Shown here in pieces: positions 22,507 to 55,920 of a stretch of 64,000 bases of DNA (positions are counted from its first letter, which is position 1; every line of letters begins with the position of its first letter). The position numbers and the translations under genes were made by a program. The DNA is from Paragordius varius (Eukaryota > Animalia > Nematomorpha): positions 6,448,001-6,512,000 of the forward strand of contig OZ176055.1 of the NCBI GenBank assembly GCA_964247055.1. Direction: 5' to 3'. The notes below the pieces were generated by a model. That model saw only the letters and a list, made by a program, of their open reading frames with translations, did not search any database and had not been told where the DNA came from.

Positions 22507-25492
22507 TTAAGCCATATTCATATTGTAACGGATCCAGAAAAAATAATTGCTCACATTTATAAAATAGTGTGGCATATTCCTTAAACACGGGCTTGACTTG
22601 ATCAAGAGTCCAACTAGGTAAAATTGTCCTTTAAACAACATACAAAATATTGGATATAATTCCATAATTTTAAACAGAGTTGTCTAACACAAATGGCTTC
22701 GCGGGCCCCATATAAAATATATATGGGCATTAATAAATATTTAATTAGATTTACAACATAATGCAAACACAATATAACAATTTCTAGTTGGTTGCCAATT
22801 GAATGTACTTATTCAGAAAATTTGTTCAATAAATCAGTTTTGCTTAGATTGTGTGGGCATATTTTTGTAAATTATGGATTTGTAAAAATTTTCGCAGGCC
22901 ACACATACTGTAATGAGGGCCGCATGTAAGACACCCCTGCTCTTAAACGATAAATATCCCATTTTTTGTTTGCAATTTAATTAAAATAATTTTTACCATC
23001 AATTTGACCCATCAAAACGGACCCTGGTGTGTGATGACAACCGTAGTCGTCAATAATTAAGCCACATAATCCAAAATCTTCCGATTGATAATTCAAACGG
23101 GGGCACAATGTCTGGTTGTTTTCGTAATTATTAAACAAGGAAACACTGATAGGTGCATACCTCTCTAAAGAACATACATTAAAAGTTTATTTTAAATAGA
23201 CAAAATGTAAAAACATAAAGACATATTTGAAAAGACCCCTGTTAGTTTTAACTCATTGGTTTAAACAAAGTATTAATTAGAGATGTAAATTATTAACAAA
23301 TTCATTTATATACTAGCGCAAATCTCGTGCTGCTACGCAGCCCGAGAAAGTCCTTCGGACTTCCGGGGGGAGGGGGGCTATTTTTCTATTTTTATAAATA
23401 TATAGATTACCATAAATAATGTTTTAACATCCATATATCCTTTAACATGCTATACATATGATAGATACTCCTTACTCAGCAGCTATCATCAAAGAAACGC
23501 TTGACTAAAATTTTTGCCTTTTAACAGGTAATACGAAAAAACCTCGATTTTTTACAGTCTCATACCTTGGGCAAAAAAATAAAATCAAAAAATTATTTTT
23601 GTGGACTTTGTTTTTTTTGAAAAAAAGTGGCATTTTAGGGGGGTAGCGGGTAAGAGGGCATAAATCAAAAATGTGAGTCGACTATGTTCAGCGCGATTAA
23701 AAATAAGTAAACAAAAATCATATTTGAAATTGAATGGTCCAACACCTTCTCCGGAAAATTGTCCCAACCTGTTTTTTACACGGGGTAGGCCCAAACTGGG
23801 GACCTAATTCCGAAAAAGGGCGAGGCTATTGTCGGGACATTTTTTTATGATTATATTTTTTCGATATTTGGATTTGATTGGGTTCACCGGATTTCTGGAA
23901 TCAGATCACAAGGTTACATGAGGAATCAGTTTTTAGCGGGTAGCTCCTTACCCAGCAGCTATCATCAAAGAAACGCTTGACTAAAATTTTTGTTTTTTAA
24001 CAGGGAATACGTGGAATCCATATTGAATTTTTATGGTCTCATCTAGGGCGAAAATTAGATTTAAAAAATTATTTTTGTGGACTTTTTTTTTGAAAAAAAT
24101 GTTTTACGGGGGGAGCGGGTAAAAAGAAGGCCCAAATCAAAAAAGCGAGACGACTATGTTCGGCGCAATCGATAATAAATAAACAAAAATCATATTTGAA
24201 ATCGAATGGTCAAACACGTTCTCCAGAAAATTGTCTCAAAGACACGATTTTTGTGGACTTCTGTTTTCAAAAAAAACCCGTTTTTCACACGGGGTGGGCC
24301 CGAACTGGGGGCCTATTTCAAAAAAAGGGCGAAGCTATTGTCGGGACATTCATTACTGTGATATTTTTTCGAAGTTTGGATTTGAATGGGTCTACCGGTT
24401 TTCCGGTACCAGATCACAAAGCCAGCATTTTCCATTTTTATAAATATATTGATTATACAATTGTATGTAAATAATTTATACAGAAAAAGATGTAAAAATT
24501 ATGGTTATCTTTTCAAAATATATATTTGTCTTTATATTTTACGTTTTGTCTGGAAAGTTTCAATTTTCACTGTATTAATTGAGATGTATGGTTAACTTGG
24601 TAAAAAACCTAAACCTGTGTAACTTAATCCAGCCACCACTAAATGCGATGAAAATCTTTGACTACTATGTGGTAAGCAAATTGGTAATATACTGGAATCA
24701 AAAATTATTCTGTCTGTTGGAACTAATGGGACATTTACTTTGTGTGGAATGTCCAGACGTCTTTTTATTTTAATCATAACAAGCTTTTCCATCTCCTCGA
24801 TATCAGGCGCCATACCTAAAAGAACACATTAAGTTTATATAAATACGGAAACATAAATTGTTTTTTTGGAATTATTTGATAATGCAACGTTTGTGCACAT
24901 TAATGTTGGTCAATTCACATTACTTTTGATCAATAAATGATACAATAGCCTATAGGTAAAAAACAACACATGGTTGAAATTACATTTTTGTCTTACTTTA
25001 CAACATTAAATTTACTTAACTATGGACCAAGTTTGTTTTATATGATACGCTACTTTATTACCGATTGGTCAGCAATAATTGAATCCAACATTACTGTGCA
25101 TGCAGTAAAAATAGAATATGAACCCATACAGGGGAAGTCTTGCATATAGACAAATTTAGATCATAAAAATATTCGGATTTAATAAAGATAATAAAATTGT
25201 CAGTCCCCATATAATATAAATTAAATCAATATTTAAATGTTATCAAAATATACCCTGGTAATCAATAATATGGTCTATCGAATAATGTCGTTCGCTCACA
25301 TCCCAATGATTAGATGAATAATCGCCAACAATTATGCGGCTCTGAAGATACTCTTGATTATTGGTAATACATTTTTTAACAGTTAGAACCCATTTGTGAT
25401 TGAGTAAAGCCCCTGAACACGTTTTATTATGGGGTGTTTCAATGCGGACCAACCTGTTTTTTAAAAACAATAATGTGTACAATTTACCTCTC

Positions 25493-25523
<31 letters not shown>

Positions 25524-28500
25524 GAATTTAATATGCTTTTTACATTAGATCTCACAAACAATAGTAGAATAGTTAAATTTAAATTTGTACACAATGCGTG
25601 TGTGTGGGACAAAGTTCGAAATCCTTTTCAGTTCTAAGCAGACAAGTGTTAACGTCATCATGAATCCTTAGGTCATTTTAAGTCCTTAGTTATGTGAATG
25701 CGTTGAATTAACTTTTGTGGATAGTTTACTGTCTTATGCCTTATGATGAGAAATTTCAGAGACACAATTTTTATGTGATTTATAATTTCTTGAACATTGT
25801 AAAAAAACTAGGAAGAAAATGCGGTTGTATAAAATGTATTTTTTAAAAGGGTTACGAACCGGAACCGAAACTACATTGAACCGGAACCCGGTTCCTGAAA
25901 TTTAACAAAGACATGGTTATCATAATTTTTAAATTTACTGTCAAATATTAATTCGAATAATTGATCATATCGTAACCTTTTTTTCTTTATCCGATTGAAA
26001 TGGAATTACTATAGTGACATTTTTTTTCTGAATCTTTCCCTTTGACACCTGAAGAAAACCACAAACATAATTATTAACGTCTCTAAAAAGTCTGAACAAA
26101 TTTTATTTTTTAAGTTAATATAAGATTTTGATCCATAGATGCAATAGTTAATGCAATTTCATTTATTACCTAAATTTATACTTATACATTCGAATATTGA
26201 TTTCTTCTAATAAATTATGTTTTGATTCACAATTTATGATCTTTCGGTTTATATATATTAAAAATGTTGCATGTGCATCATTTAATTAAAGTTAGGAATC
26301 AAGAATCGGTTAGGGAACCGTAAAATTTCTACACAACCAACCCGATTCCGGTCAAAATTTTAAGAACCACATCTGTTCCATTTTTACCTTAGTAACGAGG
26401 TAGGTTCCAGCTCCACCTTTTTCGCCCCGGTTTGAAGCCCTGATTATTAAGCGGCCTATTCTATGTGCAAATTATCTGCACAACGGCTTATTCATATGAC
26501 ATTATACACTAATCATATTCTTTAAATAAAAAATTTTGTTATTACGAATTCCGCAATTTTTAAACTGTTTCATCAAGACTAAATTATTGCATAGAGATTT
26601 TATGTGATTTTAAAATATAAATATACCAAGGTACAGGGAAATGTGGAGTTTTTTCAGTCCTTATTTGATCCCATGATGGTGATCCAATTTTACTATATAA
26701 ATCTTGTTTGTGAATTACTCCACAAAATTTTGCTATCATGTATAAAATATTGATATAATTTATTTTTCCAAGCGAGTCATGTAAAAGAAAATCGACAATT
26801 TAAAACCCAAAAGTTTCAATAATTAGGGTTGATAACCCGATAGAATTTGGAACGAGTTTTTCGGCTCTACCAAATTAGAACTTAATCAAATTTATGCGTG
26901 TTTAATCATCATCGAATTCACCAATTTTACGCCACGTTCACCTAAAAATAAATCCAGCTTTGGTTCTATTTTTATTTTCTACCGTTTCTTCAAAAATAAT
27001 CAATGACCCTCTTTAGTTTATTTGATAGGTTTTAATCTGTCATATATCACTTATTTTCCCATGCTTTCCGTAGTTCCGCCACCAATTGGACTTTGTAAAA
27101 AAATACACCAAAAAAATATCCTTTAGTCCTTTCTTTAAAATTTATATGGGTAATAAAAACAATTGCTCCGTCTAGGTAGCGCAAAAACCCTGTCAAAATG
27201 AGTTTTTTTATTTCATTAATTAATTAACTATTTATGAGTGATTTTCAATATGTTTAAACCCTATAGAGTTATAAAAAAAATTTTACAATCGAATTATCGT
27301 TTACAACATTAAATAAATAAAAAATATTATTTCTTGTTTGCACGGATTATTTAGAAAGTTAAACGGTGCATTATGACGTATAATTAAAATAATATTTTCC
27401 AAATCACTATATATTAGTGATATTAGCAATAGATTAAACAATTTTGTTTAGTGAGGGGAAGAAAAAAAATATTTTTTAGGCATTTTAAAATTAAATTTAT
27501 TAAAACTTGAATTGCATTCGGGTCCTGCGCGACTTATACAGTGACAATAATTAAATGAATCACATGATCCATATGAATGATTGGTACAATTGCACTCTAA
27601 AATAATTATTGTAAACGTTTAGCAATCTTTTGTAACGTTAGACAAATATAAATATGTTTATATTATTTTTTCAAATTTCGTCAAACAGATATTAAGTTTC
27701 ATCAAATTTTCGAAAACATACCTTTGTTACACGATTTTCCTGTAAATCCCGGTTTACAGCTACAATAACCAAGGTAGTCACAAACGTTATCAAAAGAATT
27801 ATTGCCACATTTGCATTCTTAAACATATCAGTTAAAATGGATTTATTGTTTAATACAAATAAACGATAAAATTATTTTATATTAATTTAGTGGTTAGCTG
27901 GTTAGACCCAACACTATCAAAAAAACATTATTTGACTTATTAGTAAGAATTTTTGAAGGTATAAATATTGTTAAAAATTGGGTATTTTAAAAGGAGATAC
28001 CATATTCACAAAACTGTCCATAATAGCCAGGATTGCATTTGCAATGACCTTTAGCATCGCACCAATTCGTATCTGAATGTATACACTGGCAAGCTAATAT
28101 TTTTATGATGAAAATCATATAATGCAAAGCCACATTATATAATAATATTTAATTAAATCTGTAAAAAAAATTCATTCGCAGTAGCTCACTATAAATCTTT
28201 ATGGTCACGCTTTAGATTAAAAAAATTATATAACCATAAATAAATACCAATAGTACATCTTAACCCACGGTATCCATCTCTACAATTACATTGGCCATCT
28301 AAATCGCGACAATCGGTCCCCAAACTTGTACAATTATGACACCTGCATTCTATATTAAATCAATTTTAAATTATTTATATTTACTCTTTAAATAAATCTA
28401 CTGCTTTTTATCAATAATTATCAAAGAATATGAATTAAAATAAACTATATATTTACATCTTCCGGATTTGATTTCAATTCAATCTTAATTTGGAACTTAA

Positions 28501-31500
28501 AAAAGAAGGTTATTTGCAGTCTAGAATCTTTATTATCGAATTTCGATTACAAAAATTTAACGCCCTTAACTTTAGGCTTCATCAAGTTGACTAATCCCTA
28601 AAAAACCTTTTTTAATATGTTGTTCACTAATGTAAATAGGAGTATAAAAAATTTTTTCGTCTGACTGGAATATTGACTAAACATTTCAAAATGTCTTTTT
28701 AAGGGATTTTAATATATTTATTGAAAAATTACTAGATTTGTCGCATTAAATCAATTATTTTGCATTCTGTTGGTCAATATCTATTATGATTTAATTAAAT
28801 TCTCAAAAATATAACATTTTAGGAATGTTATTTATATTCTGTCGTCCTGTGTTTTTTACAAAAAGTGATATGGCTGTATGATGATAAATGCTATTTCAAA
28901 AAAATCACACTTGATTTAAATCTGATTTCTGTGAACCTAATTTACCTTGTTCACAAGTTGTCCCAAAATATTTCGGAAGACAAGAACATTGACCATCAAA
29001 GGGACATTCGTTGGTGAGAGATCCGATTTGATTGCAACGACAAACTATTTATCCGTTATTTATAAAATGTTAAACATTGATTACATTACGTTTCGATTAA
29101 CGGTGTATTGGTTTTTCACGATCGAAATTTTTAATTATATCGTCCCATGGAGAATGAAAAAATTATTACCATTTAAACATTTTTATGTACTTAATATGGA
29201 TATTTTAATATGCATGTTATAATTGGATAAAAAAATACTTGGATATATTATTGGGTGTAAATATTTGCTATCTCATTTGATCTGATTTAAATTACATATA
29301 TTTAAATCAAATTATATTATATAGGAATAGATTAGCATGTTTCTTCAAATTCAGTTGTTTTACTAAAATATAAAATATTTTCCAAAATTCTATAAAACAA
29401 AAAATAATTTATTCGTCCGTAACGTTTGTCGCATTTCTTTCCTGCATAATGATTCTTACAACGACACAATCCATCCCAATCGCATTCACGGGATAGTGAG
29501 TGTTCAGAACACTGGCAGTCTAAACGTTAAATATTAAATTAGGAAATGAAAAAAATCGTAAATTTAGTTTACCCAAGGATTGTAAATATGGCAAATAACA
29601 ATTGAAAAAAAAACAGCATTGGTTGTAATCTGTCTGGTATCGGTACAACTTTATAATAAAAATTCACTGAAGGATATCCTGCAAATACATGTAATCAATA
29701 ATACAACCAAGGCTATTCTTTCTTAAGTAAGAATAAAATACCTTGGGGATATAAAAAGATTTATAGGACTTATTTCCAGGATTTACTGATAATATATCTT
29801 ATTCTTTCGAAAATGTTGTTTTAAACAATTCTTAGCAAAAAGGAATATGAAATTTTATATTAGAATGTACTTTAGCCATATTTAGAGTTGAATCCCCAAA
29901 GGGTCGAGAAATAACCGGTCTGACGGCTTAGAAATAAAGTCATTTACGGTCATTGCTACAAACGCCTATATATGTAACAATCAAATAAACAACCAATCAA
30001 ATTAGTTGTTAGTAGTTAATTGCAAAAATCTGTGTTATCGGGTTAAATGTAAATTTATATTCCATCTTTTATATAAAAGAACATATGTTTAAAAGCGGTT
30101 TTAATCACGGTTATAAATGCATACATACATAATCGTCTGACAAGATTTTAATAAAACTCTATAGAGTATTTTCAAAATTACCCAAGGGGCATGTTCTGCC
30201 ATAGTAACCCTGTTTACAATCACATTGACCATTTAAATTTAGGATATGACAGTCATTTATTGTACTTTGATTGGGATGGCAATTGCAAGCTTATAAAAGA
30301 AAATAATAAGTGGTAAATAAAGATATTAATAATTAGGGAGCTTGAAAATTTTTAAATTAGGTTCTATATATATATATATATATATACAGCGAATGGGCTT
30401 CAATAAATAAATTGGCCAAACTCTATATAGAAATTTCAAAATATATGCGTCCAATAATTGAACATGAGTGTTTTGGCCATATCTTTTTATAACATGATGT
30501 AAAAGTTTTAAAATTTGTATCTTATATAAAATACTTAGCCGCTAATTCGTTTAACTCAAAGCATTCAGATAATTGTTTTATCAATGAGTGACAGGTAGCA
30601 TAACAAATGGTAATATAAGAAACCGTTTTATAACCAAAATAAATGCTATTCATAAACTCAAAATATTAGCTGTAGAGTATAGTGATTTCGATTTGTTGCA
30701 AATTCATAAGTATATTTTGGCCAATCGGCTTGTTTAAGAGAGAGAGAAATCAACAATTGTAATGACTTTCAGATTGTCGGTACAGCTTGGTTTGCACCGA
30801 CAAAGATTTCTGAGACCCCTTACATTTTCTGTCATTAGCTGGTATTCCAAGTTGGCCCTCAGATGGCCAAAATAATAAAGTTGCATTATAAGGCATGTGC
30901 CAAACAGGATATTGTGAGTTTGAGTTTGTCAAGTTTTATGTTTTGTTTGATCTTTTCATTAATCAGAATCTTTCTTCATACTACATTTCGAAAGCATTAT
31001 TTATTTACTTTTATTGACCGACACTCTGCAGCGTAATATATGCTTAGGAAGATCAATTGATTAACTCGGTTTTGACTTTAAGTATAATGTCATGTTTATA
31101 ACTATAACTAATTAGATTTCTTAATCGCTTTGACTATTGCTATTTTTCACCTATTGTTAGTCGTATGATCTGTCATTGTATAAGAAATGTAGTACTATAA
31201 AATATAATTTTTTATGAATGTTTGGGTATTATTTTAATTTTCTGAATTTGTTGTACTTAATATATGTATTTAATTATGGTTGAGCAAAATTTTTAACATT
31301 CATTATTGAAATATATAATAAGAGAGTCTCGTTTTGGTCAAGTGAATCTGACATGGAAGAACGATATAGTAGATTTTTATGCCAACATTTTGTCTAAGTT
31401 CCATAAATCCTTGGTGAGAGGTCGCATCCTTATCACATTCCATCATTCGATGATATACAGTTGTGCCATGTGGAGTGAACATGCGAGATGGTTTTAAATA

Positions 31501-33982
31501 TATGGATTTGATTATTTAAATATACATTAAATTAGATGTCTTTAACTTGGCTTTACATTAAAAACTAAATTTTATTTGAGAGGAAATCCTTAAGGATCCC
31601 CACATAACATTTCATACAACAATTATAAAAAAAAGTTTCTACCGAATTATAGGGTTTTAGCATTTTTAGCTTTGTAAATATCAAAGTTTGCAAACTAGAT
31701 TTTTGTATTTTGAAACTATATTTTATTTTGTATCCTTTTTTTAGTTTAATTTTATTTTTATTATCATGGATTTTCTATTACAGCTCACTGCGGATAAAAC
31801 AGTTTTTTGGAATTACAAAGTGCTACATGACTCAAATTTTCGTATTCTAAACAGCTACATTTTTGAACCTATTTTACTATTTATTATGAAATTGATAAAA
31901 AAAATACCCAATGAGCAATATTTTCCATAATACCCAATTTTACATAGGCAAGTATTATTACTGTCGCAATCTAAGGATTGAAGTGCGTTACAATAGCAAG
32001 GATCTATTTGTGATTCACAAAAAATTAAAATATTTTATGTTACATAAACATATAAAACAGGAGGGGTCAACACATGGCCCGCGGGCCGCAAGTAGTTTTC
32101 CGAGACTTTATGTGAGTCCCGTGGAAAATTCGAAAATTTAGATGTTGTAAATTAACTCCAAATTTTGGAATGATATTTCTTAAAAAAATTAAATAATACC
32201 CAATCGACAAAAACTAGAAAAAATTGTCATATTTTGTCGACATTTTACAGTCTTTGGTTTTAAATCTAATTAATTATTTATGAATGCCCATACATATATT
32301 ACATATATTATATATATGTATATATATATCACTGTGTGCAAAGAGATTTTTAACAAAAGTTTTTTATGAGTAAGCTTACAGCAATTTTATTTGCCTCACA
32401 ATTTTTTATTTGTTGCCGACCTAGTTTTTGAAATATTGAGAGAAAATCATTGGCTAAAAAGTGAAAATTAAGGATAATTAAAGATAATTAAAAAAATAAT
32501 GATAAAACCTGAGGTATTATGGATAATTATCGGTTTAGCCGATATTTACAATTTATAATTAGCCTAAATCATATAGTTAGGGTTTTTTAAAACTCAGATC
32601 AAAAATCGCGTTCTTTTAGATAAAAGACAAAAAATTTTTGAGGAAACTATACTAAAATATTTTTTAAATTATTTACAAGCTAAACCCAATATTAAAATCT
32701 TAACCATATTTTCTCAGTAAAAAAATATATTAAAAACCAAAAAAATGTTGTTTTTTATTTTTTCATATATGGTTCATGAGTGTATAAAAAATTTACTGGT
32801 TTATTTTGGAGTCTTACATAGGCGGGAAATATTAAGTATACAAATTAATACAATACAGGATTTACAAGTAAGAAGATATTAACCGAAAATCAGTACTGTT
32901 ACAGGGATTTTTACGGATTGTTGTTTATTCCAGTCTTTTTAAATCCTATTTTGCATAAATTTATATACTTTATAATTCCTGCTTATGTAAGATTCCAAAA
33001 TAAAAGGGTAAGTTTTTAATACCTCATATTATATGACAAAAAAAGTTAAAAAATAAAAAACAATTTTTTTTATTTCATTTTAATATAGTTTTTTTTACCG
33101 AATAAAATATGGATGTTTAGATTTTAATAGTGATAGCTTGTAAATAATTAATTAAAATATTTAATTATAGTCTCATAAATTTTTTTTATCTAGTGTGTTA
33201 AAAGAATAACGCGATTTTTTGATCTAAGTTTTAATAAAAACCCTAAATATATCATTTAAGGCTATTTATAAATTGAAAATATCTGCGAAAATGATATTTC
33301 ACCATAATATCTCAGGTTTTATCATTATTTTTTTAATTATCCTTAATCTTTACCCATTTTTTTTCTTAATATTTCAAAAACTAGGTCGTCAAAAATTTAA
33401 ATTGTTTGCGGCAAATGAATTCGCTGGTCATTAGTTATCTCATGAAAATAATTTCTTTTGGTAAAAAAATTAACCCTCCTTTTTGCAATATATATAAATA
33501 TATTTATCAAATGCGGCTAGCCTGCTAACATTTGTGTTGGACACCCCTGATATAAACGATTTGTAATACGCTCAATACTAGTAAAATATAATAATATTTA
33601 TGTCTGTTTATATCCATATAAATAACTTTTATCCAAGCCTACCTAACAGCATGACAATTTTATTTAATTCATTTAAAATAAACAGAATCATGTTAGGTTT
33701 AGTTCATGATAGGATCAGACGCCATGACAAATAATTACAATTTAACCGATTTCACAAATTATATTTCATATGAAGTTGTGTAATTTGAAAAATTTTGAAC
33801 TTTTACTCGCTTAAATTCAAAAAATATCGTTTATTATTTTTTTATTTAGATTAGAATCAATAATTTTTTATAAATTCAGCCGATTTATGTTGTTAATATA
33901 AATATTATAATAATTTACTATATGGACTTTGTGCGATTGAAACGGATATTAATGCAAAAGTTAGGGAATAATAGATGATCAT
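22507..33982 (-). CDS. Secreted serine-protease homolog: signal peptide, 8 laminin-EGF-like 6-Cys modules and a catalytically dead trypsin domain (copy 1, 14 exons, 546 aa, intact)
   Basis: Exons 33982-33919 (MIIYYSLTFALISVSIAQSPY), 32003-31908, 30289-30182, 29519-29424, 29044-28946, 28349-28248, 28093-28001, 27817-27722, 27596-27507, 26732-26627, 25453-25254, 24815-24615, 23164-22997 and 22628-22507 join in frame (1641 nt) with GT-AG ends. Trypsin landmarks: CSGALLNHKWVLTVKKC, LPICLP, YLVGLL, INVSNYFFWI. Confidence 0.82.
22675..22939. mobile_element. hAT-type MITE copy in the last intron of the protease homolog
   Basis: cagagttgtctaacacaaatggcttcgcggg ... gggccgcatgtaagacacccctg. Confidence 0.65.
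23313..24452 (-). mobile_element. Non-autonomous Helitron-like insertion(s) with two ~480-bp internal units
   Basis: On the minus strand: hairpin ctcgggctgcgtagcagcacgag, 7 nt, then CTAG-T at 23313-23346. TC-type 5' ends lie near 23406 and 24452. Units ~23465-23935 and ~23940-24450 are homologous to each other and to 40160-40663 and 45700-46130. Confidence 0.6.
32385..33425. repeat. ~1-kb degenerate palindrome (foldback element, ~500-bp arms) inside a hAT MITE
   Basis: 32385-32870 is the reverse complement of 32935-33425 (e.g. gacctagtttttgaaatatt / aatatttcaaaaactaggtc). hAT-like ends lie at ~32060 and ~33549. Confidence 0.75.
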
Positions 33983-35871: not shown

Positions 35872-37297
35872 TTCAATTATGATATATGTTTGATATATTT
35901 TTCAAAGACGCATAGTATTATATATTTACATGAAATCAAAGCGTAATGTACAATGCACCATTTAATAACTTATCAAAATTATATAAAAAATTATAAAAGT
36001 TAATTTAAAATATCTATAAGGTTTTCATTAGTATTTATTATGCGTGGTAGTCAAATTCCAATATATCATTTTTTAAATATAATAATCTATATACTATGTT
36101 ATATTGTGAAATTGATCCGAAATATATGCAATTATAGGCCATGTCACGCATCGCTGTGACTTAGCCAATGATTTTTTTAGGTTTTCAAAATAGTGACCCT
36201 AAGATTATAGAAAATTTAAAACAGACCTATTTGTTTCAATTGTTTATGTCACTATTACGGTAGCCAAATTCACGAATTTTTAATGAAGAAGCGTGTTTGT
36301 AGAATGAGGCTCGGACTAAGAGCCATTTTAAAAAAGGACTTGACTATAAACTGCGTCTTTGGGGGATCTAGGATGATTATTAAAGTCATATCGCCTCTCA
36401 TAATTTTTCCGAAATGCCTCGAAAAATTTGTGGCACCTGTGTTTTTCCGCAATAACGCTTATTATACAGGAGGTTATTCTGAACACATGGGCTCCAACAT
36501 AATATGTGATAATAATCTTAAATAAAAATAAATCTAACGATTTTGAAAACTTGCATTAAACACACTGGGCCCTCGAATTTATTGACAACTTCTCCTATTT
36601 GTACACTATGTAGGTTAAACACAGGGGGAATGGTTTTCGACTATGATCGGCGTTATGAATGAATCGATATTTACTTTAAAGTTGTAACTTAAAATTTTTC
36701 CAATTTCTTTTAAATATATTTATTTATGAAAGTTTTCCATTTTCCATTATTAGGTTTTAATTTCAGTCAATTTATTATAATTTAGATATAAATATTAATA
36801 GTAGGGTTAAGCCATATTCATATTGTAACGGATCCAGAAAAAGTAGTTGCTCACATTTATAAAATAGTGTGGCATATTCTTTAAACACGGGTTTGACTTG
36901 ATTAAGAGTCCAAGGAGGTAAATTTGCCCTTTAAACAACGTACAAAATATTATACATAATTGCATTACTAAAACGGTAAATATTCCATTTTTGCTTGCAC
37001 GCATAAATTAAACCATTTAATATTTACCATTAACTTGACCCATCAAAAGACTCCCAGGTGTGTAATGGCAACTGTAGTCATAAATAATTCACATAATCCA
37101 AAACCTTCCGATTGATAATTTAAACGGGGACACAGTGTTTGGTTGTTTTCGTAATTATCAAACAACGAAACACTGATAGGTGCATACTTTTCTAAAGATA
37201 TACATTAAAAATCGAACTTATACAAACAACATTAAACATAAAGACAGTTATATTTCAAAAGACCGCTATAATTTTTTGACTTTTAGTGCAAATTAAA

Positions 37298-38470
37298 TAG
37301 TGCCCACAAAGAAATAACCTGAATATACATATTCTGATAGGAAATGTATCAGGATTATCATAGTGGCTAGAGTTTAGGCTCTTACGGGTGATTTAAGAAA
37401 GTTATTTACCTTTTGTGGTAAATGCTCCATATTAAAAATTGAAATTTCCGCACATTTTTTAAATAATATTTTTTTGGTGAAAGCTAGAGGCTTCATTCTA
37501 AAAAATATTGTTAAATACATCATAAAGTACATATACAAAGCAAAACAATATTAGCAGATAATTTTTAGAAGTATGCTTCAAAAATCCCAAATTTTTTCCC
37601 TCTTCTAAAATGGGCTAGTCCTCTATAACAAACGCAATGCCGGCCGCGATAAAAATTTAAAATATATGATAGATTTTGATATCAACTAAAAATATTTTTA
37701 AAAAAATGCATACTTTATTCTTCAGCAAAATTTTGTTGTAGCGTACTTCGAACTATTTTGAGTCATGATGGAAACGGTTTAAAAAGGCTTTGAGATATAA
37801 TAAAAACACTTTTTCCATATAATTTAATGATAAACATTTCTATCACCTCAGAATTTTGATCAAATATATTCGTTTGACAAAAAAATGTATAATTATATAT
37901 TGTGTTTTTTTGCAAAAATTCACCAAAATTTTAAATCAAACAAACATTTAAATTAAAACTCTAAAGCGATAGAAATGTTCAGCATCATCGAATTATTGTT
38001 TTCAATCCGTTTCCATCATTACTCAAAATAAAGGTACGCTGCAATAAAATTTTGCTAAAAATTAATTTTTTTGAAAAGATATGCATTTTTTCAAAAAATA
38101 TTATTAGATGAATCTAAATTTACTATTTAAAATTTTTATAGCGGAATCCCAGCATTTTTGCGGTTTTCCAAAAAAACTAGCCCGTTTTGAAGAGCAAAAA
38201 AATTTGGAACTTTCAAAGCCCACATAAAATTAAATTATATATGTGGTATGATATAGTGATATTTTTTGGAATGAAGCCTCTAGCTTTCACCAAAATTTTA
38301 TTTAAAAAAATGTGCACAAATTTTACCATTTTCTGATATGGAGCACTTACCCCAAAAATATAAGTAATTTTCGCTAATCACGTACGGGCCAAAAGCCAAA
38401 TCAACCATGATAATTCTAATACATTTTCCTTCAGAATATATACTTCATTCGGTTATCTGTTTACCACTGA
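37298..38470. mobile_element. ~1.17-kb foldback / long-TIR non-autonomous DNA element (CAGTG-type ends)
   Basis: The left arm (tttttggtgaaagctagaggcttcattctaaaaaatat) is the reverse complement of the right arm (ttttggaatgaagcctctagctttcaccaaaa). Related sequence occurs at ~61590-62700 and ~63100-63720. Confidence 0.7.
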
Positions 38471-39433
38471 TTTTGGACGCAGTGTTATTGTTATAAATTG
38501 CAAAGTGTGAAGAGATATTGGCAACCACAAATTATATATTTTACAATTACTGTTAAATAATTTATATTGAAAAAATCAAGGTTGAAGAAGTATGGGTGTA
38601 TTTTGAAAAAAAAACTAAATGTTTTAACGTTTCGTCCGTATATTTTCAATTTTTACTGTATTAAAGTTTTAGATTAACTTAAAAGTAAACGCTAAATAAC
38701 ACTACCTGTGTAACTTAATCCGGCTACCATTAAATGTGATAATAATCTTTGACTACTATGTGGTAAGCAAATTGGTAATATACTAGAATCTAAAATTATT
38801 CTGTCTGTTGGAACTAATGGGACATTTACTTTGAGTGGAATGTCCAGACGTCTTTTTATTTTAATCATAACCAACCTTTCTATCTCCTCGATATCAGGCG
38901 CAATACCTTTTGTTTGAATCCAATATAATACATATATCAAATTTACAATGAAAACAGAAACCTATTTTCGGAATTTGGCAGCGTTTGTTTGCATTTAAAC
39001 ATATAATATAAACCCAATTTATTGTTTTGGAAAAGAAGTAAATATAAGTTAAAATTTCGGGTTAAAAAATAATTGAGTCCCCATAAAAATTTTCTTCTTT
39101 TTTCAGTTGCATAAATCTTAAAAAAACTCAATTTATATAATAAATCAATATTTAAATTATAATATAAATAAACCCTGATAAGCAACAATATGGTCTATAG
39201 AATAATGTCGTTCACTCACATCCCAATGATTAGCTGAATAATCACCAATTATTATACGGCTCTGAAGATATACTTGGTTTTTTCCAATGCACTTTTGAAC
39301 GGTTAGTACCCATTTGTGATTGAGCAAAGCCCCTGAACACGTTTTATTATGGGGTGTTTCGATTCGGACCAACCTGTTTCGAGAAATAATAATGAGCACA
39401 ATTAATTAACACAAATATGTCATTTTATGTTAT

Positions 39434-40663
39434 AGTAGCTGGCCCTATCACGCTTTGTTGTGACGTAGTCACCGATAATTATTCCTAATAATTTGCAATA
39501 ACTAGAGGCAACGAAGATATAAATAATAAAAAATATATTTAATAAAAAGAATGCCTTTAATTATATTTTTACGGGATTTTGTATAGGCTATCGTTAACTA
39601 ATTGACCATATTTAAACTGTCCCTTATTAAACTTAATTCAAGCATTGGGTTTATTTTAAGATTTTTACGAAATCATGGTTGAAAGTTATATTTCGAAATT
39701 GTGTTCCACAGATGGGATCAAGGGATATAAAAAGTAAGTCATTTGTGGTCCCTTTTTAAAGGAAAGAATGATATACGATTCCCCAAAAATGTGTTTAACT
39801 AAACTCGTATGGCTTCTTAAGTTTTTTGAAAATTGGCTCCAAAACCACGCCATTTTTGTATGGCATCTCAGAACCGGTAGACTCCTACCCATACAAGCTC
39901 TGAGTTAAATTCTTTGTCTTTATAGAGTTATTTGGAAGTTGCGTTGTTTTGGAGCTAATCAGAAAATTTATGAAGCCATATGAGCTCATTAAAAGAAGCT
40001 TGAAAGATTACTCGTAACTAGCTAAAAATTAAGGTCAGGCGTTTTTTTACTAGCCGTTAATTTGGTTCCCTAAAAATACACTATCATATAATAATTATTT
40101 GGTGTTGAAATATTTTTTCCATAACCCATGAGACGATGGTATCAAAGATAGCGCAGTTTATGGCGGGTAGCTCCTTACCCAGCAGCCAATATAAAAAAGC
40201 AGACTAAAATTTCTGACTTTTAACAGGAACCTGGAATCCTCATTGAATTTTTACGGTCTCATACCTTCAAAAAATAGATTCAAAAAAATATTTTTGTGGA
40301 CTTGGTTTTTTGAAAAAAATGGCATTTTACGGGGGGAGCGGGTAAAATGAGGGCTTAAATTAAAAAGCGAGCCTATGTTTGGCACAATCGAAAATAAGTA
40401 AAATAAATCACATTCGAAATCGAACGGTCCAGCACGTTTTCCGGAAAATTGTCTCAAAGACACGATTTTTGTGGACTTTTGTTTTCAAAAAAACCCGTTT
40501 TTTATGCGGGGTGGGCCCGAACTAGTGGCCTAATTTAAAAAAAGAAATTGTCGGGGCATACATTATGATTATATTTTTTTCGACATTTGGATTTAAATGG
40601 GTCTACCGATTTTCCGGAAACAGATTACAAAGCCAGCATTTTCCATTTTTATAAATATATAGA
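39434..40663 (-). mobile_element. Non-autonomous Helitron-like element, same family as 23.3-24.4 kb
   Basis: Minus-strand 5' end tctatatatttataaaaatggaaaatgctggc at 40663. The body is shared with 23465-24452 and, inverted, with 45700-46572. Confidence 0.6.
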
Positions 40664-42115
40664 TTAATTTTGTTAAAACTTCCCTCACTAACATAAATAT
40701 TTAAGGAATTCATCCAATTTTAAGATGTGCCTGTAATAGATCTATAGTGGCAGAAGTTAGTTTTTTTCGGTGAAGGATTGACAATAACTTAGGTGAATGG
40801 CGCCAACAGCATGTCTTTTGACTCTGGTAAGCTACCATTTTTATGTGGCTTATTTCTATTAATTAGAACTTATAACTAGAAAACTAGGAGGAAATGTAGT
40901 TGTATAAAATGTATATTTTGATGGCTTATTTATCTTAAACAAATTTGAGTCTGCTCGACGTCTCATTCACATGATCTTTAAAATTTGTTATAACAAATTC
41001 CCCAATTTTTAAACTGTTTCATCAAGATTAAATTATTGCATAGAGATTTTATGTATTTTAAAATATAAATATACCAAGGTACAGGGAAATGCGGAGTTTT
41101 TTCAGTCCTTATTTGTTCCCAAGCTGGTGATCCGATTTTACTATATAAATCTTGCTTGTGAATTACTCCACAAAATTTTTCTATCATGTATAAAATATGG
41201 ATATAATTTATTTTTCCAAACGAGTCAATAAGAAAATTTTCAGTTTTAAAAACTCGTAAATTGTATTGTTAGGGTTGATATTCGGTTAAAATTCGGAATC
41301 AGTTTATTAATCATTACAAATTTAAACCGAAGCTCCGTTTTTTATTTATTCTCCAACTTACCAATTTCATTTAAAATACCAGTTTCTATTACTAGTCACG
41401 GTTTCTTAAACAATAACCAATAACACCATTTAGTTTTGGTTGCGAATCTGTGATATAATCACTATATTCCCTAATCTCATAGTTCCGCCTTAATCTCTAT
41501 AAAATAGACCGTAATGGGTAATAAAATCAATTTCACATTGCTAGGTACTGTTAAAACTCTATTGAATATATTAGTTTTTTATTTCATAAGTACATTTAAA
41601 CTCTATAGGAAAATAATATTTTTTTCCAAATGAAATGATGTTTAACACAAATTTCGATTAAATCTTAATAAATTAGCTCCTTAAATGTGATCTTAGCAAT
41701 AAATTAAACAATATTGGTAAATAAAAGAACAAAATATTATATTGCCATTTTAGTTTTAAATTATAAAAACTTGAATTGCATTCCGATCCAAAGCGACTTA
41801 TACAATGGCAATAATTAAATGAGTCACATGATCCATACGAAGAATCGGTGCAATTGCACTCTAGAAAAAAATGCATAATAAAAGAAGTTCCTCAAAAAAT
41901 TTAGCGCAAATATGTAAAACACAAACTTTGAAACTGCATCTTAATTAATTTTATTAAAAAACATACCTTTATCACATGTTTTCCCGGTAAATCCTGGCTT
42001 GCAATTACAATAACCAAGGAAGTCACAAACGTTATCAAAAGAATTATTGCTACATTTGCATTCTATGATTTAATCAATTTACAATATTATTCAGCTCTAC
42101 AAGGATTCTCTAAAC

Positions 42116-42382
42116 CAGGATGTGTCCAAATGGCTTCGCGGGCCGCATAACCCAGTGTGCCGCATAAAATTATTTGGGCAATAAATATTTTATTAGATTT
42201 CTTACATAAAACTGTGAAATGTAAACAAAATATTAATTTTTTCTGGTTCGTTGCAAATTTGATACTCAATCAGAAAATTTGTATGGTATTTAATTATAGT
42301 AACAGAATATTAACATATTTTTGAGAATTATGGATTTCGAAATTTTTAACGGGTCGCACAGACCGCCTATCGGACACCCCTG
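42116..42382. mobile_element. hAT-type MITE copy
   Basis: caggatgtgtccaaatggcttcgcgggccgcat ... ggacacccctg. Confidence 0.65.
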
Positions 42383-44420
42383 CTTAAACATTTTTTTATT
42401 TAAACATTGTTAAAATTAAGAACCATATACAGCTACCATACTCACAAAACTGTCCATAATAACCAGGACTACATTTGCAATATCCTCTAGCATCGCACCA
42501 ATTCGTATCTGAGTGTATGCAGTGGCAAGCTATAATTTTAGGAGGAAAAATATTAATTAATGCAGCCACATAATATACTAATATTTTAGTTTCGTTTTTT
42601 TCCATTGCAGTAGCTCACCGTAAATCTTTATAGACTTGCTTTAGATTTAGCAAAATTTAGTTTTGTTAAGTTGCAGAATGTAATATTTATACCTAGAGTA
42701 CATCTTAATCCACGGTATCCATCTCTACAATTACATTGGCCATCTAAATCGCGACAATCGGCCCCCAAACTTGTGCAATTATGGCACCTGCATTCTATAT
42801 TAAATCAATTTTTCAATAAATAAATGAAATTTATCATTATTCTTGGAAAATAACTTTTTTGATATATGTATTAATTCATAAGGAATTTATTAAATTTTTT
42901 AGTGTATCTGGAGCATTAACCAAACAGGTTTAATTAAAATTTAGCCATTTTTAATATATATTTTATTAATTTTCGCATTCGTTCTCGCATAAAAACAGTT
43001 TTTTTGCCGCAGGCCAATTAATGTGATATTTTTGAATTGAAATAATTATTTTGTGCAGTCTGTGTTTTTCACAAAAAGTGGTTTAACTTTATAATAATTG
43101 ATAAAGGTTTAAATCTAATTTATGTGAACCTAATTTACCTTGTTCACAAGTTGTCCCAAAATATTCAGGTCGACAAGAGCATTGACCATCAAAAGGACAT
43201 TCGGTGGTGATAGATCCGATTTGGTTGCAACGGCAATCTATTTACACGTTATTATTAAAATGTTTCAATTAACGGTGTATATTGGTTTTATGTGAATATA
43301 ATTTTAAATTTTTATATCGTCTCATGAATAGTGAACAAATCTCACCATTCGAACATTTTTAATATTCACTACTGACCTTTTTATATGCATGTTACAACTG
43401 GATAAAAATATATTTATTTTGTAGTTCGCTCTCTGATCAGATTCAATTTGAATTACACATAAAAATCATATTATTATCCCTGTCATAAGCGAACTTTTTA
43501 TACAGGAAAGATAATCATGCATCCTCAAATAAAAAATATAGTTGTTCTGCTAAAATATATAACACTTTCGAAAAAAATTATTTATATGTTCCAAACGTTT
43601 GTCGCATTTCCTTCCTGCATAACGAGTCTTACAACGACACAATCCATCCGAATCGCATTCACGGGATAATGCGTTTTCAGAACACTGGCAGTCTAAACAT
43701 TAAATATTGAATTAATAAATAAAATAAATCTTATAGTAATTATTTTTACACAAGGATCATAATACTGCAAGGAATTACCAGAATTATTCATTAATATTCG
43801 GACAGTAATCTTTTTTTAAAAAACTGCATTGGTTGTATCATTTATAACGTGTATTTCCAAGATGTCTCTGATTGGTACACCTCTATAATCAAACAAAGGG
43901 CATCTTGCAAATACATGTAATCCATGATACAAACAGGCCTCATAGTCTTACAAATAAAAATACCATCCGGATATAAACAGGTTTTCTAAGACATAGTTCC
44001 ATTACTGTAAATTTGTCTAGTCTATCAAATTACTTTCTGCAAAAATGTTTTCCAAACTATTCTTACAAAGGGGGAATACATATTGTAATAATTTTTGACA
44101 GTATCCATATCTATATGCCTTTAGCCATATTTAGAATTGGATCTCTGAACAGTCAAGTAGTAATTCCTACCTTAATTCCTTATAAATGAAGTCATTCACT
44201 GTCATAACCAGTTAAATACTATCACAATCGCTAACATATTTTGTAAACAAAATAACCAATCAAATTGGTGTTTATCAATGTTAACAGACAATTTGTTTTA
44301 AACCATTAAATATAAATTTCTGTCGTATTCTTTTATATATCAGGTGATAAACATTTGTTAAATTTTTTGAAATATTTAAAAGCGGTCATAGTCGTGGTTA
44401 TAACTTAATATACCATTTGC

Positions 44421-44562
44421 ACTTCAAAAGTGTCCTTGAACACTTCGAGTTGTCCTTGAACATTTAAAGTTGGTCCTTGAACACTTCAGGTTGGCCTTGA
44501 ACATTTCAAGTTGGTCTTTGAACACTTCAAGTTGGTCCTTGAACACTTCAAGTTGGTGCTTA
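44421..44562. repeat. Minisatellite, ~7 copies of a 20-21 bp unit (acttcaagttggtccttgaac)
   Basis: Head-to-tail units with no spacers. Confidence 0.9.
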
Positions 44563-45464
44563 AAATTTTTTATTGATTTAATTATAATTTTTGCATCTAT
44601 ATTATTTTATTATTTTTTAACCTAATTTTCTTTATTTAATATATATTTATTTATTTTAAGATTTATCTTCAAAAACCACTTTTTTTGTTCCAGAATATAA
44701 TTTTTCCACCTTAACAAAATTATTTAAATGTTATTAATTACTGTAATAATAACCCAGAAAACTTATATATTTTTTAATTACGTGTTAAAATCTTAAAAAT
44801 ATCCAAAATAATTTTAAGAATAAAGATATACGATTTAGCCAAAGTTGTCTTTATAGCTATATGTATTTGAAAATTACCCAATGAGCATGTTCTACCATAG
44901 TAACCTCTTTTACAATTACATTGGCCTTTTGTTATTATGTGACAGTCATTTATTGTGCTTTGATTGGAATGACAATTGCAAGCTTAAAAAAGAATATTAC
45001 AAAAAGGGTATAAAATAAATAAAATTAAATATAGTAAATAAAACTTTGAGGTTAGTTTTTATAAGTTTTGAAATATGTTTATAGATAGAGAAAGATTTTA
45101 ATAATCCAAGATTGGCAACACCATAGTAAAACAAAAGTTTAATAAGTCAAATATCTAAATGAATGTTTTGCTAGTATTTTGTAACATGAAGTGAAACATT
45201 CATTCAATAGTAACATGTTTATCCCATATTACAACCAAGTTTTAAATACTGGAAAGGTAAAGGCATTTTAGGAAGCTGACCATACTAAAACCTAAAAATT
45301 TATTATTAAAGGTAATTTCTACATTCAATAAAATATTAATTTTGTTGTAACATGGATCGATGTCGATATAATGCTTTTTTCGTAGGTGTATATTTGTTTT
45401 TTTGTTCGGGAAATCGAAAATTATAATGATAGAATGGTTTCTTTAGTCACGTTGTTGATCTAGA

Positions 45465-46791
45465 GCAGGGCCTCTTAAACTATGGGTCGCGACCCCATTT
45501 GGGGTCGCGAGTGATCAAAATCCAATTTAACAAAAAAATGTTTTTTAACTTGTATTATTGTTATAAAGAAAAATAACAATCATCGTAGATAAATATATCT
45601 TAAATCTTCTGGTTCGGAAAGACTGTTTATACGAGCATTTCTGTTATCATTATAATCTATATATTTATAAAATTGTAAAATGTTGGCTTTGTGATCAATT
45701 AAACCGGCAGACCCATTCAAATCCAAATGTCAAAAAATATAATCATAAATAAATGTCCCGATAGCTTCGCCCTTTTTTTGAATTAGGCTCCCAGTTCGGG
45801 GTCCGTGTAAGAAACGGTTTTTTTTGAAAACAGAAGTCCAGAAAAATCGTGTCTTTGAGACAATTTTACGGAAAACGGGTTGTACCATTTGATTTCAATT
45901 ATGATTAATTTTACTTTTTTTCGATTGCGCCGAACCTATTCGGCCTAATTTTTTTAATTTTTACTCGTTCCCCCAGTAAAATGCCATTATTTTCAAAAAA
46001 ACTAAATAATTTTTTGCCCAGGGTAGGAGACCGTTAAAAATCAATTCTCTGTTAAAAGGCACAAATTTTAGTATTGCCTTTTTTTATATTGGCTGATGGG
46101 TAAACAGATAGCCGCTAAAACTGCGCCACTATATAAAAATTGCGTTGTTTTAGAGTTAATTTTTAAAAAACTTAAGGAGCCATACAAGTTCAGTTAAATT
46201 TATTTCTGGGGAATTTGTATAATATCATTCTTTCCTTTAAAAAGGGACCACAAATGATTTATTTTTTATATCTCTTGATCCCAGTTGTATGAACACTATT
46301 TTAAAATACTTTTAACCTTGATTTTATAAAAAGCTTAAAAATCCAATGATAGTTAAATATTAACTTTAATAAAGGACAGATTATATATGGTCAATTTCGT
46401 GTAAACAATATTTCAGCCTATGCAAAAACCTGTAAAAGAATAATTAAAGACATTCTTTTTATTTAATATGTTTATTATTATTTTTTTATCTCCATTAACT
46501 CTATTTATTGTAAATTATTATGAATAATTATCGGTGAGACTACGCCACACCGAAGCTAGACGGCAGCCAGTATCTTGTAGAAATTTACTATGAATCAGAC
46601 AATGTTATAGAAATTGATAAAAATGTAAATTTATTTTTGGCAATCTCTCAAAACCGAAATAATCCTGATAAATATTATCAACAAAATTTCTAAATGTTAT
46701 TTCGAAGAAACTATTATTTTATATTTATTGGGGTCGTTAAGCACGCTATCATAAATGGGGTGGGGACCTACAAAAGTTTAAGAAGCCCTGC
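45465..46791. mobile_element. hAT-like element with a nested Helitron-like insertion (~45700-46572)
   Basis: Ends cagggcctcttaaactatgggtcgcgacccc ... ttttaagaagccctg. The internal 45700-46572 segment is the reverse complement of the 39434-40663 element. Confidence 0.55.
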
Positions 46792-47518
46792 GTTTTACTG
46801 AATGCATTTTATGGAATCTCTTTTTGTGTTATCACTGGTACTCCAAGTTTTTTGCTCTGGTAGGGCCATTTACAAAGTCTAATTATAAACTTGTAGCAGG
46901 GCTATGTCAGGTTTGATTTTGTAAAGAATTTTGCTTTTGATTTTATTTTTTCAATTAATTTGCACATCTTTCTCCAACACCACATTAAATTTTTATTTTC
47001 CCTTTTTTGTTTGAGTCGCTACGGCTTAAAGCATAATTGGGAGATCAGAGATTTGATTAATATGGTTTTGACTTTAAGTTTGCTGTCATGTAATGACCAT
47101 AACCATAACTTGTTTTATTTTATCATAATCGCTTCGCCTATTTTCATTCTTCTCCTATAGATCTTTTTGATTACCAAGGTGTATGTAGTCTCGGACTAGA
47201 ACAATTTCATTTTTATGAATGTTTTGGTATTATTTGGTTTTGTATTATGGAAAAATTTGTGTGTTTCTGTTGTTGTAATTAGTGGTTTGCCGAATTTGAC
47301 ATTCGGTGGTAATTTGTATTAAAGTTTCTCGAGTTTGCCAAGTGACGATATTGAATCATCCGCTTAGTTTAGTGCCTATATAGTAATACCGGAGATTTTA
47401 TAGTATCCAATTGCTTGTGTAGTGTGGAGTTGATATGCATAATTTGTATATATCAATTTGAATATATGGAATTGATTAAGTATGTTTTTATATTTTTCAC
47501 AATACAAATAGTTTATCA

Positions 47519-47807
47519 TACCATTTACAATTCAAATTCACCCTTGAACAATTCAAATTATCCCGAACAATTCAAATTCACCCTAGAAATAAATTATGCG
47601 TTTTTGGAATAATTTAATTCATCATTAATATGAAATATATTTTTACGACATATTTTATTATTTTTTCAGAATTATATTAATTTTAACCGGAATTTTATAT
47701 TTTAAAAATGTTATAAAATAAAAGTAATTTTTAATCTTAAAAAACAAAAAATTTATTTTAGGGTGAATTTGAATTGTTCGAGGGTGAATTTGAATTGTAA
47801 ATGGTAT
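47519..47807. mobile_element. MITE with tandem subterminal repeats (aattcaaattcaccc); related copy at ~51495-51760
   Basis: taccatttacaattcaaattcaccc ... gggtgaatttgaattgtaaatggta, a perfect inverted pair. Confidence 0.75.
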
Positions 47808-53876: not shown

Positions 53877-53914
<38 letters not shown>

Positions 53915-55447: not shown

Positions 55448-55488
<41 letters not shown>

Positions 55489-55884
55489 GTTAAATTCAAG
55501 CGCCTTTCTAAAAAGGATTTGACTAATTTATTTAATATTTTAAGGCTATTTTTGTGTCCGAGCAAACGACCTTGTAACAAAATTATTATCGTAAAAACAA
55601 TCAATATTCCTTTTATTTACGGCCATAAATTCTATATAATACGGGAATTTCAGCACGCCATCCCAACGATAAATTGTTTTTTTTGCTAACGTTATAAAAA
55701 TATATTTTTTGTTTCTACATACACAAAAGGCAAAAATAGTAAAAAAAGGTTCTGATATTATTGATTTTTATGTGATGACCATCAAATATTTTATAAAACA
55801 TACCACTAAATAATGTTTTTTATTATAAAAATGTTATGTAACTACTTTGTAGGACTTTTGTCATGTGAACTAAAAATTAATGAG

Positions 55885-55920
<36 letters not shown>

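Follow-up and report, generated by a model that had tools for sequence, protein, structure and literature searches.

A hairworm gene family joining laminin-type EGF modules to a trypsin-like domain that appears to lack the catalytic triad

The DNA analysed here is a stretch of 64,000 nucleotides (nt) of contig OZ176055.1 from the hairworm Paragordius varius, referred to below as the window; all coordinates are positions in it, unless another contig is named. The gene in question, designated copy 1, is located on the minus strand and runs from position 33982 down to 22507. Its product is predicted to be a secreted protein in which eight modules of the epidermal growth factor (EGF) type, related to those of laminin, precede a trypsin-like domain with all three residues of the catalytic triad replaced. 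A second, tandem copy lies in the same window, and further genes of the same design are found elsewhere in the genome.

The gene at the locus

The window is very AT-rich (24–36% G+C), and its minus strand exhibits a series of stop-free segments in which eight modules rich in Cys and four pieces resembling trypsin can be recognized. The splice sites were set by eye and with a script, and copy 1 could be rebuilt from the window DNA as a gene of 14 exons (22507..33982, minus strand) that add up to 1641 nt and comprise 546 codons and a TAA stop, all introns being of the GT-AG type. The layout is simple—exon 1 supplies the N-terminus, exons 2–9 the EGF modules and exons 10–14 the protease-like domain. 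The exons are as follows (a slash stands for a presumed cleavage site):

Exon 1, 33919..33982, minus strand: ATG and signal peptide (MIIYYSLTFALISVSIA/QSPY), ending in phase 1
Exon 2, 31908..32003, minus strand: EGF module E1, 6 Cys, phase 1-1
Exon 3, 30182..30289, minus strand: EGF module E2, Pfam EGF_laminin match of 28 bits
Exon 4, 29424..29519, minus strand: EGF module E3, EGF_laminin match of 23.3 bits
Exon 5, 28946..29044, minus strand: EGF module E4, EGF_laminin match of 30.4 bits
Exon 6, 28248..28349, minus strand: EGF module E5, with an odd seventh Cys (CRCHNC...)
Exon 7, 28001..28093, minus strand: EGF module E6
Exon 8, 27722..27817, minus strand: EGF module E7, EGF_laminin match of 21.1 bits
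Exon 9, 27507..27596, minus strand: EGF module E8, the most divergent one, with a weak GTTTTA donor and no Pfam match
Exon 10 (TN), 26627..26732, minus strand: linker with the "KFCG" Cys (expected partner of Cys122), activation-site relic SK/IGSP, FPVPW
Exon 11 (TA), 25254..25453, minus strand: N-terminal barrel of the predicted trypsin fold, Cys42-Cys58 pair, His57 replaced by Lys (TVKKC)
Exon 12 (TB), 24615..24815, minus strand: Asp102 replaced by Lys (EKLVMIKI), a 14-residue insertion variable in the family, PICLP (Cys122)
Exon 13 (TC), 22997..23164, minus strand: Cys168-Cys182 pair and CHHTPGSVL, i.e. Cys191, Gly193 replaced by His, Asp194 by Thr and Ser195 by Pro
Exon 14 (TD), 22507..22628, minus strand: last strands and C-terminal helix (Cys220, ...NVSNYFFWI...), TAA at 22507-22509

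The N-terminus encoded by exon 1 is hydrophobic, with a mean Kyte-Doolittle value of 1.9 over residues 1–17, and reads as a signal peptide. No second hydrophobic stretch resembling a transmembrane segment was found in the hydropathy profile of the 546-residue translation. For the mature protein, a mass of ~60 kDa, an isoelectric point of 6.9, ten N-x-S/T sequons and 57 Cys are predicted, the total of Cys being odd because module E5 has a seventh one. To judge from these sequence features, the product of copy 1 is predicted to be secreted.

The array of EGF-type modules

Modules E1–E8 follow the pattern C-x-C-x(6-10)-C-x(4-7)-C-x-C-x8-C, each of them being encoded by one phase 1-1 exon, the classic form of a shufflable module. 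The Pfam model EGF_laminin (PF00053) matches in seven of the eight EGF exons, four of the matches (those of E2, E3, E4 and E7) reaching the gathering score—the cut-off being 21—and three staying below it; in the same Pfam comparison nothing was found for module E8. All the matches cover the profile from position 1 to ~33 out of 49. When the 16 modules of both copies are aligned, positions C2, C4, C12, C18, C20, G26 and C29 are invariant. The modules thus carry the first six of the eight Cys of the laminin-type EGF (LE) module, and loop d, formed between Cys7 and Cys8, is missing; based on their sequences, they are best described as LE-like modules ending after the sixth Cys.

It should be noted that the seventh Cys of module E5, in the form CxCxxC, recurs in several paralogues, where it is likewise followed by three more modules. 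The recurrence of this particular module together with the three further ones suggests that the eight-module order is ancestral.

The protease-like domain

Exon TA is the part of the domain that is recognized most readily, scoring 30 bits against the Pfam Trypsin model (PF00089; cut-off 20.6). In its alignment with porcine elastase, KTCSGALLNHKWVLTVKKC stands over HTCGGTLIRQNWVMTAAHC and TAAHC over TVKKC, so that the position of His57 is occupied by Lys. The remaining protease-like exons appear too divergent for recognition on their own, and for exons TB and TC nothing significant was found among the PDB sequences. The domain taken as a whole, compared by HMMER with a profile of 260 positions built locally from 167 trypsin domains, gives 89.7 bits (E 9e-30) and covers profile positions 21–248, and a feature search of the atlas returned trypsin clusters only.

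The whole-domain alignment places CQGDSGGPL over CHHTPGSVL, i.e. the oxyanion-hole residue Gly193 is replaced by His, Asp194 by Thr and Ser195 by Pro, while residue 189 of the S1 site is Tyr. Concerning Asp102, two registers have to be considered: an alternative HMMER alignment postulates an insertion of 18 residues and puts Asn at this position, whereas the alignment of paralogues sets (K/R)-L-A-L-x-K-I over D-I-A-L-L-K-L and yields Lys in copy 1. The latter register, with EKLVMI over NDIALL, is favoured because the paralogues align in that way, one of them having no insertion at all. All seven Cys of the fold find their counterparts—42-58, 168-182 and 191-220 as presumed pairs plus Cys122 in PICLP—and the linker Cys in KFCG, the expected partner of Cys122, is also present. 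Of the zymogen activation features, there is only the relic SK/IGSP at the cleavage site, accompanied by the replacement of Asp194.

Taken together, the alignments identify the domain as a homologue with the predicted fold of peptidase family S1, in which the positions of the fold disulfides are kept. They also indicate that the classical triad is not available to it, with His57, Asp102, Ser195 and the oxyanion Gly193 all being replaced. Since Asp194 is gone as well, neither cutting of a peptide bond nor classical zymogen activation would be expected.

These results can be set beside a preliminary description of the locus made from the DNA letters, which had proposed a secreted product of a 14-exon, 546-residue open reading frame with a signal peptide. 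The rebuilt model arrives at identical figures, and the predicted signal peptide without a transmembrane segment agrees with secretion. The motifs quoted there—TVKKC (TVQKC in copy 2), EKLVMI, CHHTPGSVL and PICLP—are all present; the claimed loss of all three catalytic residues corresponds to the replacements His57 by Lys, Asp102 by Lys and Ser195 by Pro in the alignments. Its register for Asp102 (EKLVMI over DIALL) is the one supported by the family alignment over the HMMER alternative, and the structural Cys and PICLP, said to be retained, are indeed found at the fold positions and at Cys122. The eight laminin-EGF-like Cys modules stand as to their number, but have to be redefined as truncated LE modules with six of the eight Cys.

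The second copy and selection

Copy 2 lies in tandem with copy 1 on the same strand and possesses the same set of exons:

Tandem copy 2, 36807..48752, minus strand: the same 14 exons, each 84–94% identical in nt to its counterpart in copy 1, with TVQKC in place of the His57 motif
Exon TC of copy 2, 37028..37191, minus strand: 4 nt of copy 1 deleted between 37090 and 37089, TGA at 37043-37045

Both the deletion and the premature TGA, into which it shifts the frame, lie in the exon encoding the surroundings of Ser195. The preliminary description had already recorded TVQKC in this copy, to which the frameshift now has to be added.

The exons of the two copies are 84–94% identical, as against ~68–83% for most of the aligned intron blocks. 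The ratio of nonsynonymous to synonymous substitution rates (dN/dS), calculated by the Nei-Gojobori method, is 0.19 at a dS of 0.345, with similar values for the EGF array (0.16) and for the dead protease domain (0.18), and all 57 of the 57 Cys codons are common to both copies. The copy 1 gene is therefore far more than a matter of chance; it is under purifying selection. Even the copy 2 codons past the break, read in the old frame, have a dN/dS of 0.26, so that the lesion should be recent, polymorphic or an assembly error.

Apart from the coding parts, the TB-TC intron of copy 1 contains two tandem units of a repeat of ~450–530 nt (23468-23911 and 23927-24455), which is met again in the TN-TA intron of copy 2 (40154-40666), with 72–83% identity. 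The repeat probably represents a small mobile element of the non-autonomous kind.

The gene family in the genome

The searches for further members covered the window's own assembly of 110,561,105 bases in 44 contigs. Exon TA was found in 12 places and the EGF profile in 91, and each of the TA-like exons is preceded, on the same strand, by LE-like modules. In the loci of paralogues, one to nine modules, as defined by a regular expression, precede the TA exon, and exons of the downstream part of the domain follow it. A profile made of the 12 TA exon sequences retrieved the 12 loci at 68–103 bits and, in addition, a more divergent thirteenth locus at 27.7 bits, which likewise has EGF modules upstream. 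These scores set the 12 loci apart from the divergent member as well as from everything else. There are thus at least 13 TA-type loci with an EGF array on six contigs, i.e. 11 beyond copies 1 and 2. The family is defined by LE-like modules that precede, on the same strand, a TA-type exon lacking His57, and by Lys or Arg at position 102; copy 1 shows all of these features. Some of the members are arranged as local pairs, these being located on contig 1 at 3.72/3.76 Mb and at 5.02–5.60 Mb, and on contig 4 at 12.18/12.26 Mb. With so many loci, and with the triad dead wherever it can be assessed, the idea of the copy 1 gene as a single oddity was rejected.

Per-exon jackhmmer searches for TN, TB and TC in the paralogues returned nothing, and these exons were placed by means of a generic profile together with their position. 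The residues at the positions of the triad are the following:

His57 position, 13 of 13 loci assessed: K, K, L, D, R, R, S, T, D, D, E, T, S; no His
Asp102 position, 7 of 7 assessable loci: Lys or Arg
Ser195 position, 7 of 7 assessable loci: P, D, L, Y, L, V, K; no Ser

Since the triad is missing throughout the family, it would have been lost before the radiation of its members, the basic residue at position 102 having been kept since then. One paralogue still retains an activation-type motif, R-IVNG. The genome also contains many canonical trypsin loci, among which the Pfam model barely detects the EGF-array family.

Further clusters of LE-like modules were seen on contig 2 at 4.55 Mb, contig 3 at 11.65 Mb, contig 4 at 1.47 Mb, contig 8 at 1.32–1.36 Mb and contig 10 at 2.76 Mb, and no TA-type exon was detected near any of them. 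They represent either other EGF-repeat genes or members of which the protease part is too divergent or lost.

Relatives elsewhere and comparison with known systems

The searches of public proteins were made at single-exon sensitivity. A HMMER search of the whole protein library with exon TA yielded 45 matches, all of them generic trypsins—mostly multi-domain ones—and none of more than 50% identity; the best of them share 25–40% identity with the query. The collection therefore does not contain the gene itself. LE-like modules were found in none of the 45 by the regular expression applied to all of them, nor by Pfam applied to 10. A word-index search with the 12-sequence TA profile gave one irrelevant fragment of a bird trypsin, the length window of that search excluding full-length relatives, and a scan of JGI metagenomes revealed no relative. 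It should be pointed out that even the paralogues within the genome score just 27–44 bits against copy 1 in single-exon searches; orthologues in other hairworms could therefore be missed.

As to the literature, no description of an EGF array joined to a dead trypsin was found in that on insects, ctenophores and hairworms, and the hairworm genome papers contain no mention of proteases or EGF. A survey of trypsin architectures (the tryptome) lists Laminin_EGF together with trypsin only in a sea-anemone transcriptome, where Laminin_N is present too. The preliminary description had called the architecture unfamiliar, and this impression holds, since the literature check brought no description beyond the sea-anemone set of Laminin_N, Laminin_EGF and trypsin. 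Judged by its sequence, the combination of a laminin-type EGF array with a dead trypsin domain appears to be a new architecture of serine-protease homologue.

Four known systems offer themselves for comparison. The serine-protease homologues usually carry clip or CUB domains or, as the preliminary description adds, kringle or sushi domains. Those of arthropods—such as masquerade, PPAF-II and Vn50—resemble the present family in being secreted, in having a C-terminal chymotrypsin-fold domain without catalytic residues, in the linker Cys paired to Cys122 and in forming, quite often, multigene families; they bind rather than cut, as the hairworm proteins presumably do. They differ in the N-terminal part, which consists of clip or CUB domains in place of an LE-type EGF array, as well as in the extent of the loss, usually confined to Ser195 in the arthropod proteins but involving the whole triad plus Gly193 and Asp194 here. 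No clip domain was detected by the Pfam scans in the exons of copy 1, the N-terminal modules of which are all of the EGF type.

The layout of protein Z and of coagulation factors VII, IX and X (Gla-EGF-EGF-protease) shares with copy 1 the EGF modules directly upstream of a trypsin fold and, presumably, the disulfide between a pro-region Cys and Cys122, and the protease domain of protein Z is non-catalytic, too, serving as a cofactor. Copy 1, however, has no Gla exon, its exon 1 running directly into E1; it contains eight modules instead of two, and these are laminin-type ones with a CxC start rather than canonical or calcium-binding EGF modules. The family, moreover, appears to be lineage-specific in the hairworm. 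HGF and MSP have a dead trypsin-fold head that binds a receptor, positioned behind an array of small disulfide-rich modules; in their case, however, the array is made of PAN and kringle domains, Asp102 is kept and an activation cleavage is needed, while Asp194 is replaced in copy 1. Neither a kringle nor a PAN match was obtained for the copy 1 exons in the Pfam scans. Finally, the rods of LE modules found in laminin, netrin, perlecan and the MEGF proteins exhibit the same CxC...C...GxCxC...G..G..C pattern, the Pfam model EGF_laminin matches in copy 1, and in matrix proteins such tandem arrays form rigid rods; the modules of copy 1, in contrast, stop after the sixth Cys (positions 1–33 of 49) without loop d, and a protease fold is not found at the end of any of these known proteins.

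Proposed role and rival explanations

The role considered probable for the copy 1 product—with a confidence that is somewhat above even, yet well short of certainty—is that of a non-enzymatic extracellular binder carried on an EGF rod. The eight truncated laminin-type modules would form a stiff rod or spacer with the chymotrypsin-fold domain at its end, and this dead protease domain would serve as a head for binding proteins, in the manner of other serine-protease homologues. The unpaired Cys of module E5, a candidate for an intermolecular disulfide, may allow covalent dimerization or cross-linking. Such a secreted, N-glycosylated and disulfide-rich protein could serve as an extracellular adaptor or scaffold, the candidate partners being the matrix or cuticle of the worm itself on the one hand and proteins of the host haemolymph on the other. 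The former are regarded as slightly more likely because LE rods are typical of matrix and because the selection is purifying, not diversifying. Several points weigh against the role proposed: exons TN, TB, TC and TD have no Pfam match when taken singly; both the fold and the geometry at the lost active site are read from sequence alignments, just as the joining of the 14 exons is read from genomic DNA; the function as scaffold or adaptor is reasoned by analogy; and the frame-shifted copy 2 demonstrates that the family can lose members.

Two further explanations concern the gene itself. According to one of them, the EGF array and the trypsin-like domain belong to two neighbouring genes that just happen to be joinable in frame, for which the weak donor of E8 (GTTTTA) could speak; the same adjacency, order and strand are, however, met at 13 loci on six contigs, the intron phases agree across the junction (1 into 1), the trypsin part lacks its own start codon and signal peptide, and the Cys that is expected to pair with Cys122 is encoded by the first of the trypsin exons, all of which makes an artefact of this kind highly improbable. 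According to the other, copy 1 is a pseudogene in decay, as the frameshift makes copy 2 seem to be. This can be given hardly any more credence, since the frame of copy 1 is intact over 546 codons, 14 exons and all splice sites, the dN/dS between the copies amounts to 0.19—and to 0.26 even in the part of copy 2 past the frameshift—and the exons have remained 84–94% identical as compared with ~68–83% for most aligned intron blocks.

The remaining alternatives accept the gene and concern the target of its product. The preliminary description had thought of host interaction if the organism were a parasite, and the hairworm is indeed a parasitoid of insects. The secreted dead proteases could then be decoys that bind components of the clip-protease, prophenoloxidase or serpin systems of the host, thus blunting melanization and encapsulation. 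The growth of the hairworm in the insect haemocoel, a product predicted from sequence to be secreted and non-catalytic, and the expansion of the family to at least 13 members are in line with this, and a precedent exists in Vn50, a serine-protease homologue of wasp venom, which inhibits host melanization, as summarized in PMC5408209. On the other hand, the dN/dS of 0.19 between the recent duplicates indicates purifying selection and not the diversifying one common in host-interaction genes, there is no clip domain, and the insect homologues are not close, the best matches being generic trypsins at 25–40% identity; a host-directed decoy is consequently held to be unlikely. An equally speculative extension, which would make the whole 13-gene family a hairworm invention of EGF-stalked effectors disarming the clip-protease/prophenoloxidase (or Toll) cascades in the haemolymph, is likewise viewed with doubt. 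Still less probable seems a role in the worm's own physiology, in which the protein would be a non-catalytic cofactor or competitor in endogenous extracellular protease cascades, similar to arthropod serine-protease homologues and protein Z. The many canonical trypsin loci in the genome would provide possible partners, one paralogue keeps R-IVNG, and linker Cys and Cys122 are arranged as is typical of cascade proteases; but with Asp194 replaced by Thr and the S1 residue 189 by Tyr, the conformational change that normally follows cleavage could not be set off. Hairworms, moreover, are not known to have a protease cascade, which also counts against this possibility.

Should the copy 1 product be a non-enzymatic binder as proposed, the family would be of interest in several respects. 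Pseudoproteases as such are known; what sets this one apart is that all the catalytic and activation residues are gone, that a conserved basic residue takes the place of Asp102, and that the domain is borne by a putative rod of eight laminin-type EGF modules, an architecture now represented by at least 13 genes in the genome of a hairworm. Few animal phyla have been studied as little as the hairworms, and their persistence in insect hosts, like their manipulation of them, is hardly understood at all. A family of secreted non-enzymatic binders would offer concrete candidates for host interaction or for the unusual cuticle and matrix of the worm, as well as a natural series for asking what the trypsin fold is selected for after catalysis has been lost. 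If the disarming of host cascades were true, it would provide a molecular basis for the survival of hairworms, unencapsulated for weeks, in the body cavity of the host.

Other features of the window and the genome

Two other coding features were noticed in the window:

10694-12406, plus strand: single-exon open reading frame of 570 residues for an amino-acid transporter, with Aa_trans in its homologues and SLC38A9-like by the names of its matches
52715-57266, minus strand: long open segments of 408, 144 and 122 residues, resembling exons of a multi-pass membrane protein

The best public homologue of the transporter belongs to the hairworm Gordionus (41% identity) and the next best to Ascaris (30%), and its exact sequence is absent from a collection of 15 billion proteins.

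The mitochondrial genome is represented by contig 44 (15,693 bases). Its form, one contig and not a set of minicircles, argues against the body louse as the source, while a search for the arthropod cuticle family PF00379, made without a positive control, found nothing and is given no weight; the spliced leader of the ctenophore Hormiphora was not found either, although a control pattern was. Contig 44 abounds in perfect palindromes inside coding regions, with arms of up to 208 nt at 100% identity, so that identical peptides are read from both strands; palindromes inside coding regions are described for the mitochondrial DNA of Nematomorpha (PMC6649704). In Gordionus, the G+C content of the genome is 26.9% and the mitochondrial DNA measures 15,085 bp, both close to the values obtained here. 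Together with the best homologue of the transporter, these features point to a hairworm. A tandem array of 72-nt units occupies positions ~6745-7451 of contig 44, upstream of cox1, and cox1 itself has six in-frame TGA codons. On the nuclear contig 1, a cox1-like fragment with six stop codons was identified at 10612280-10612597, which is probably a nuclear copy of mitochondrial DNA.

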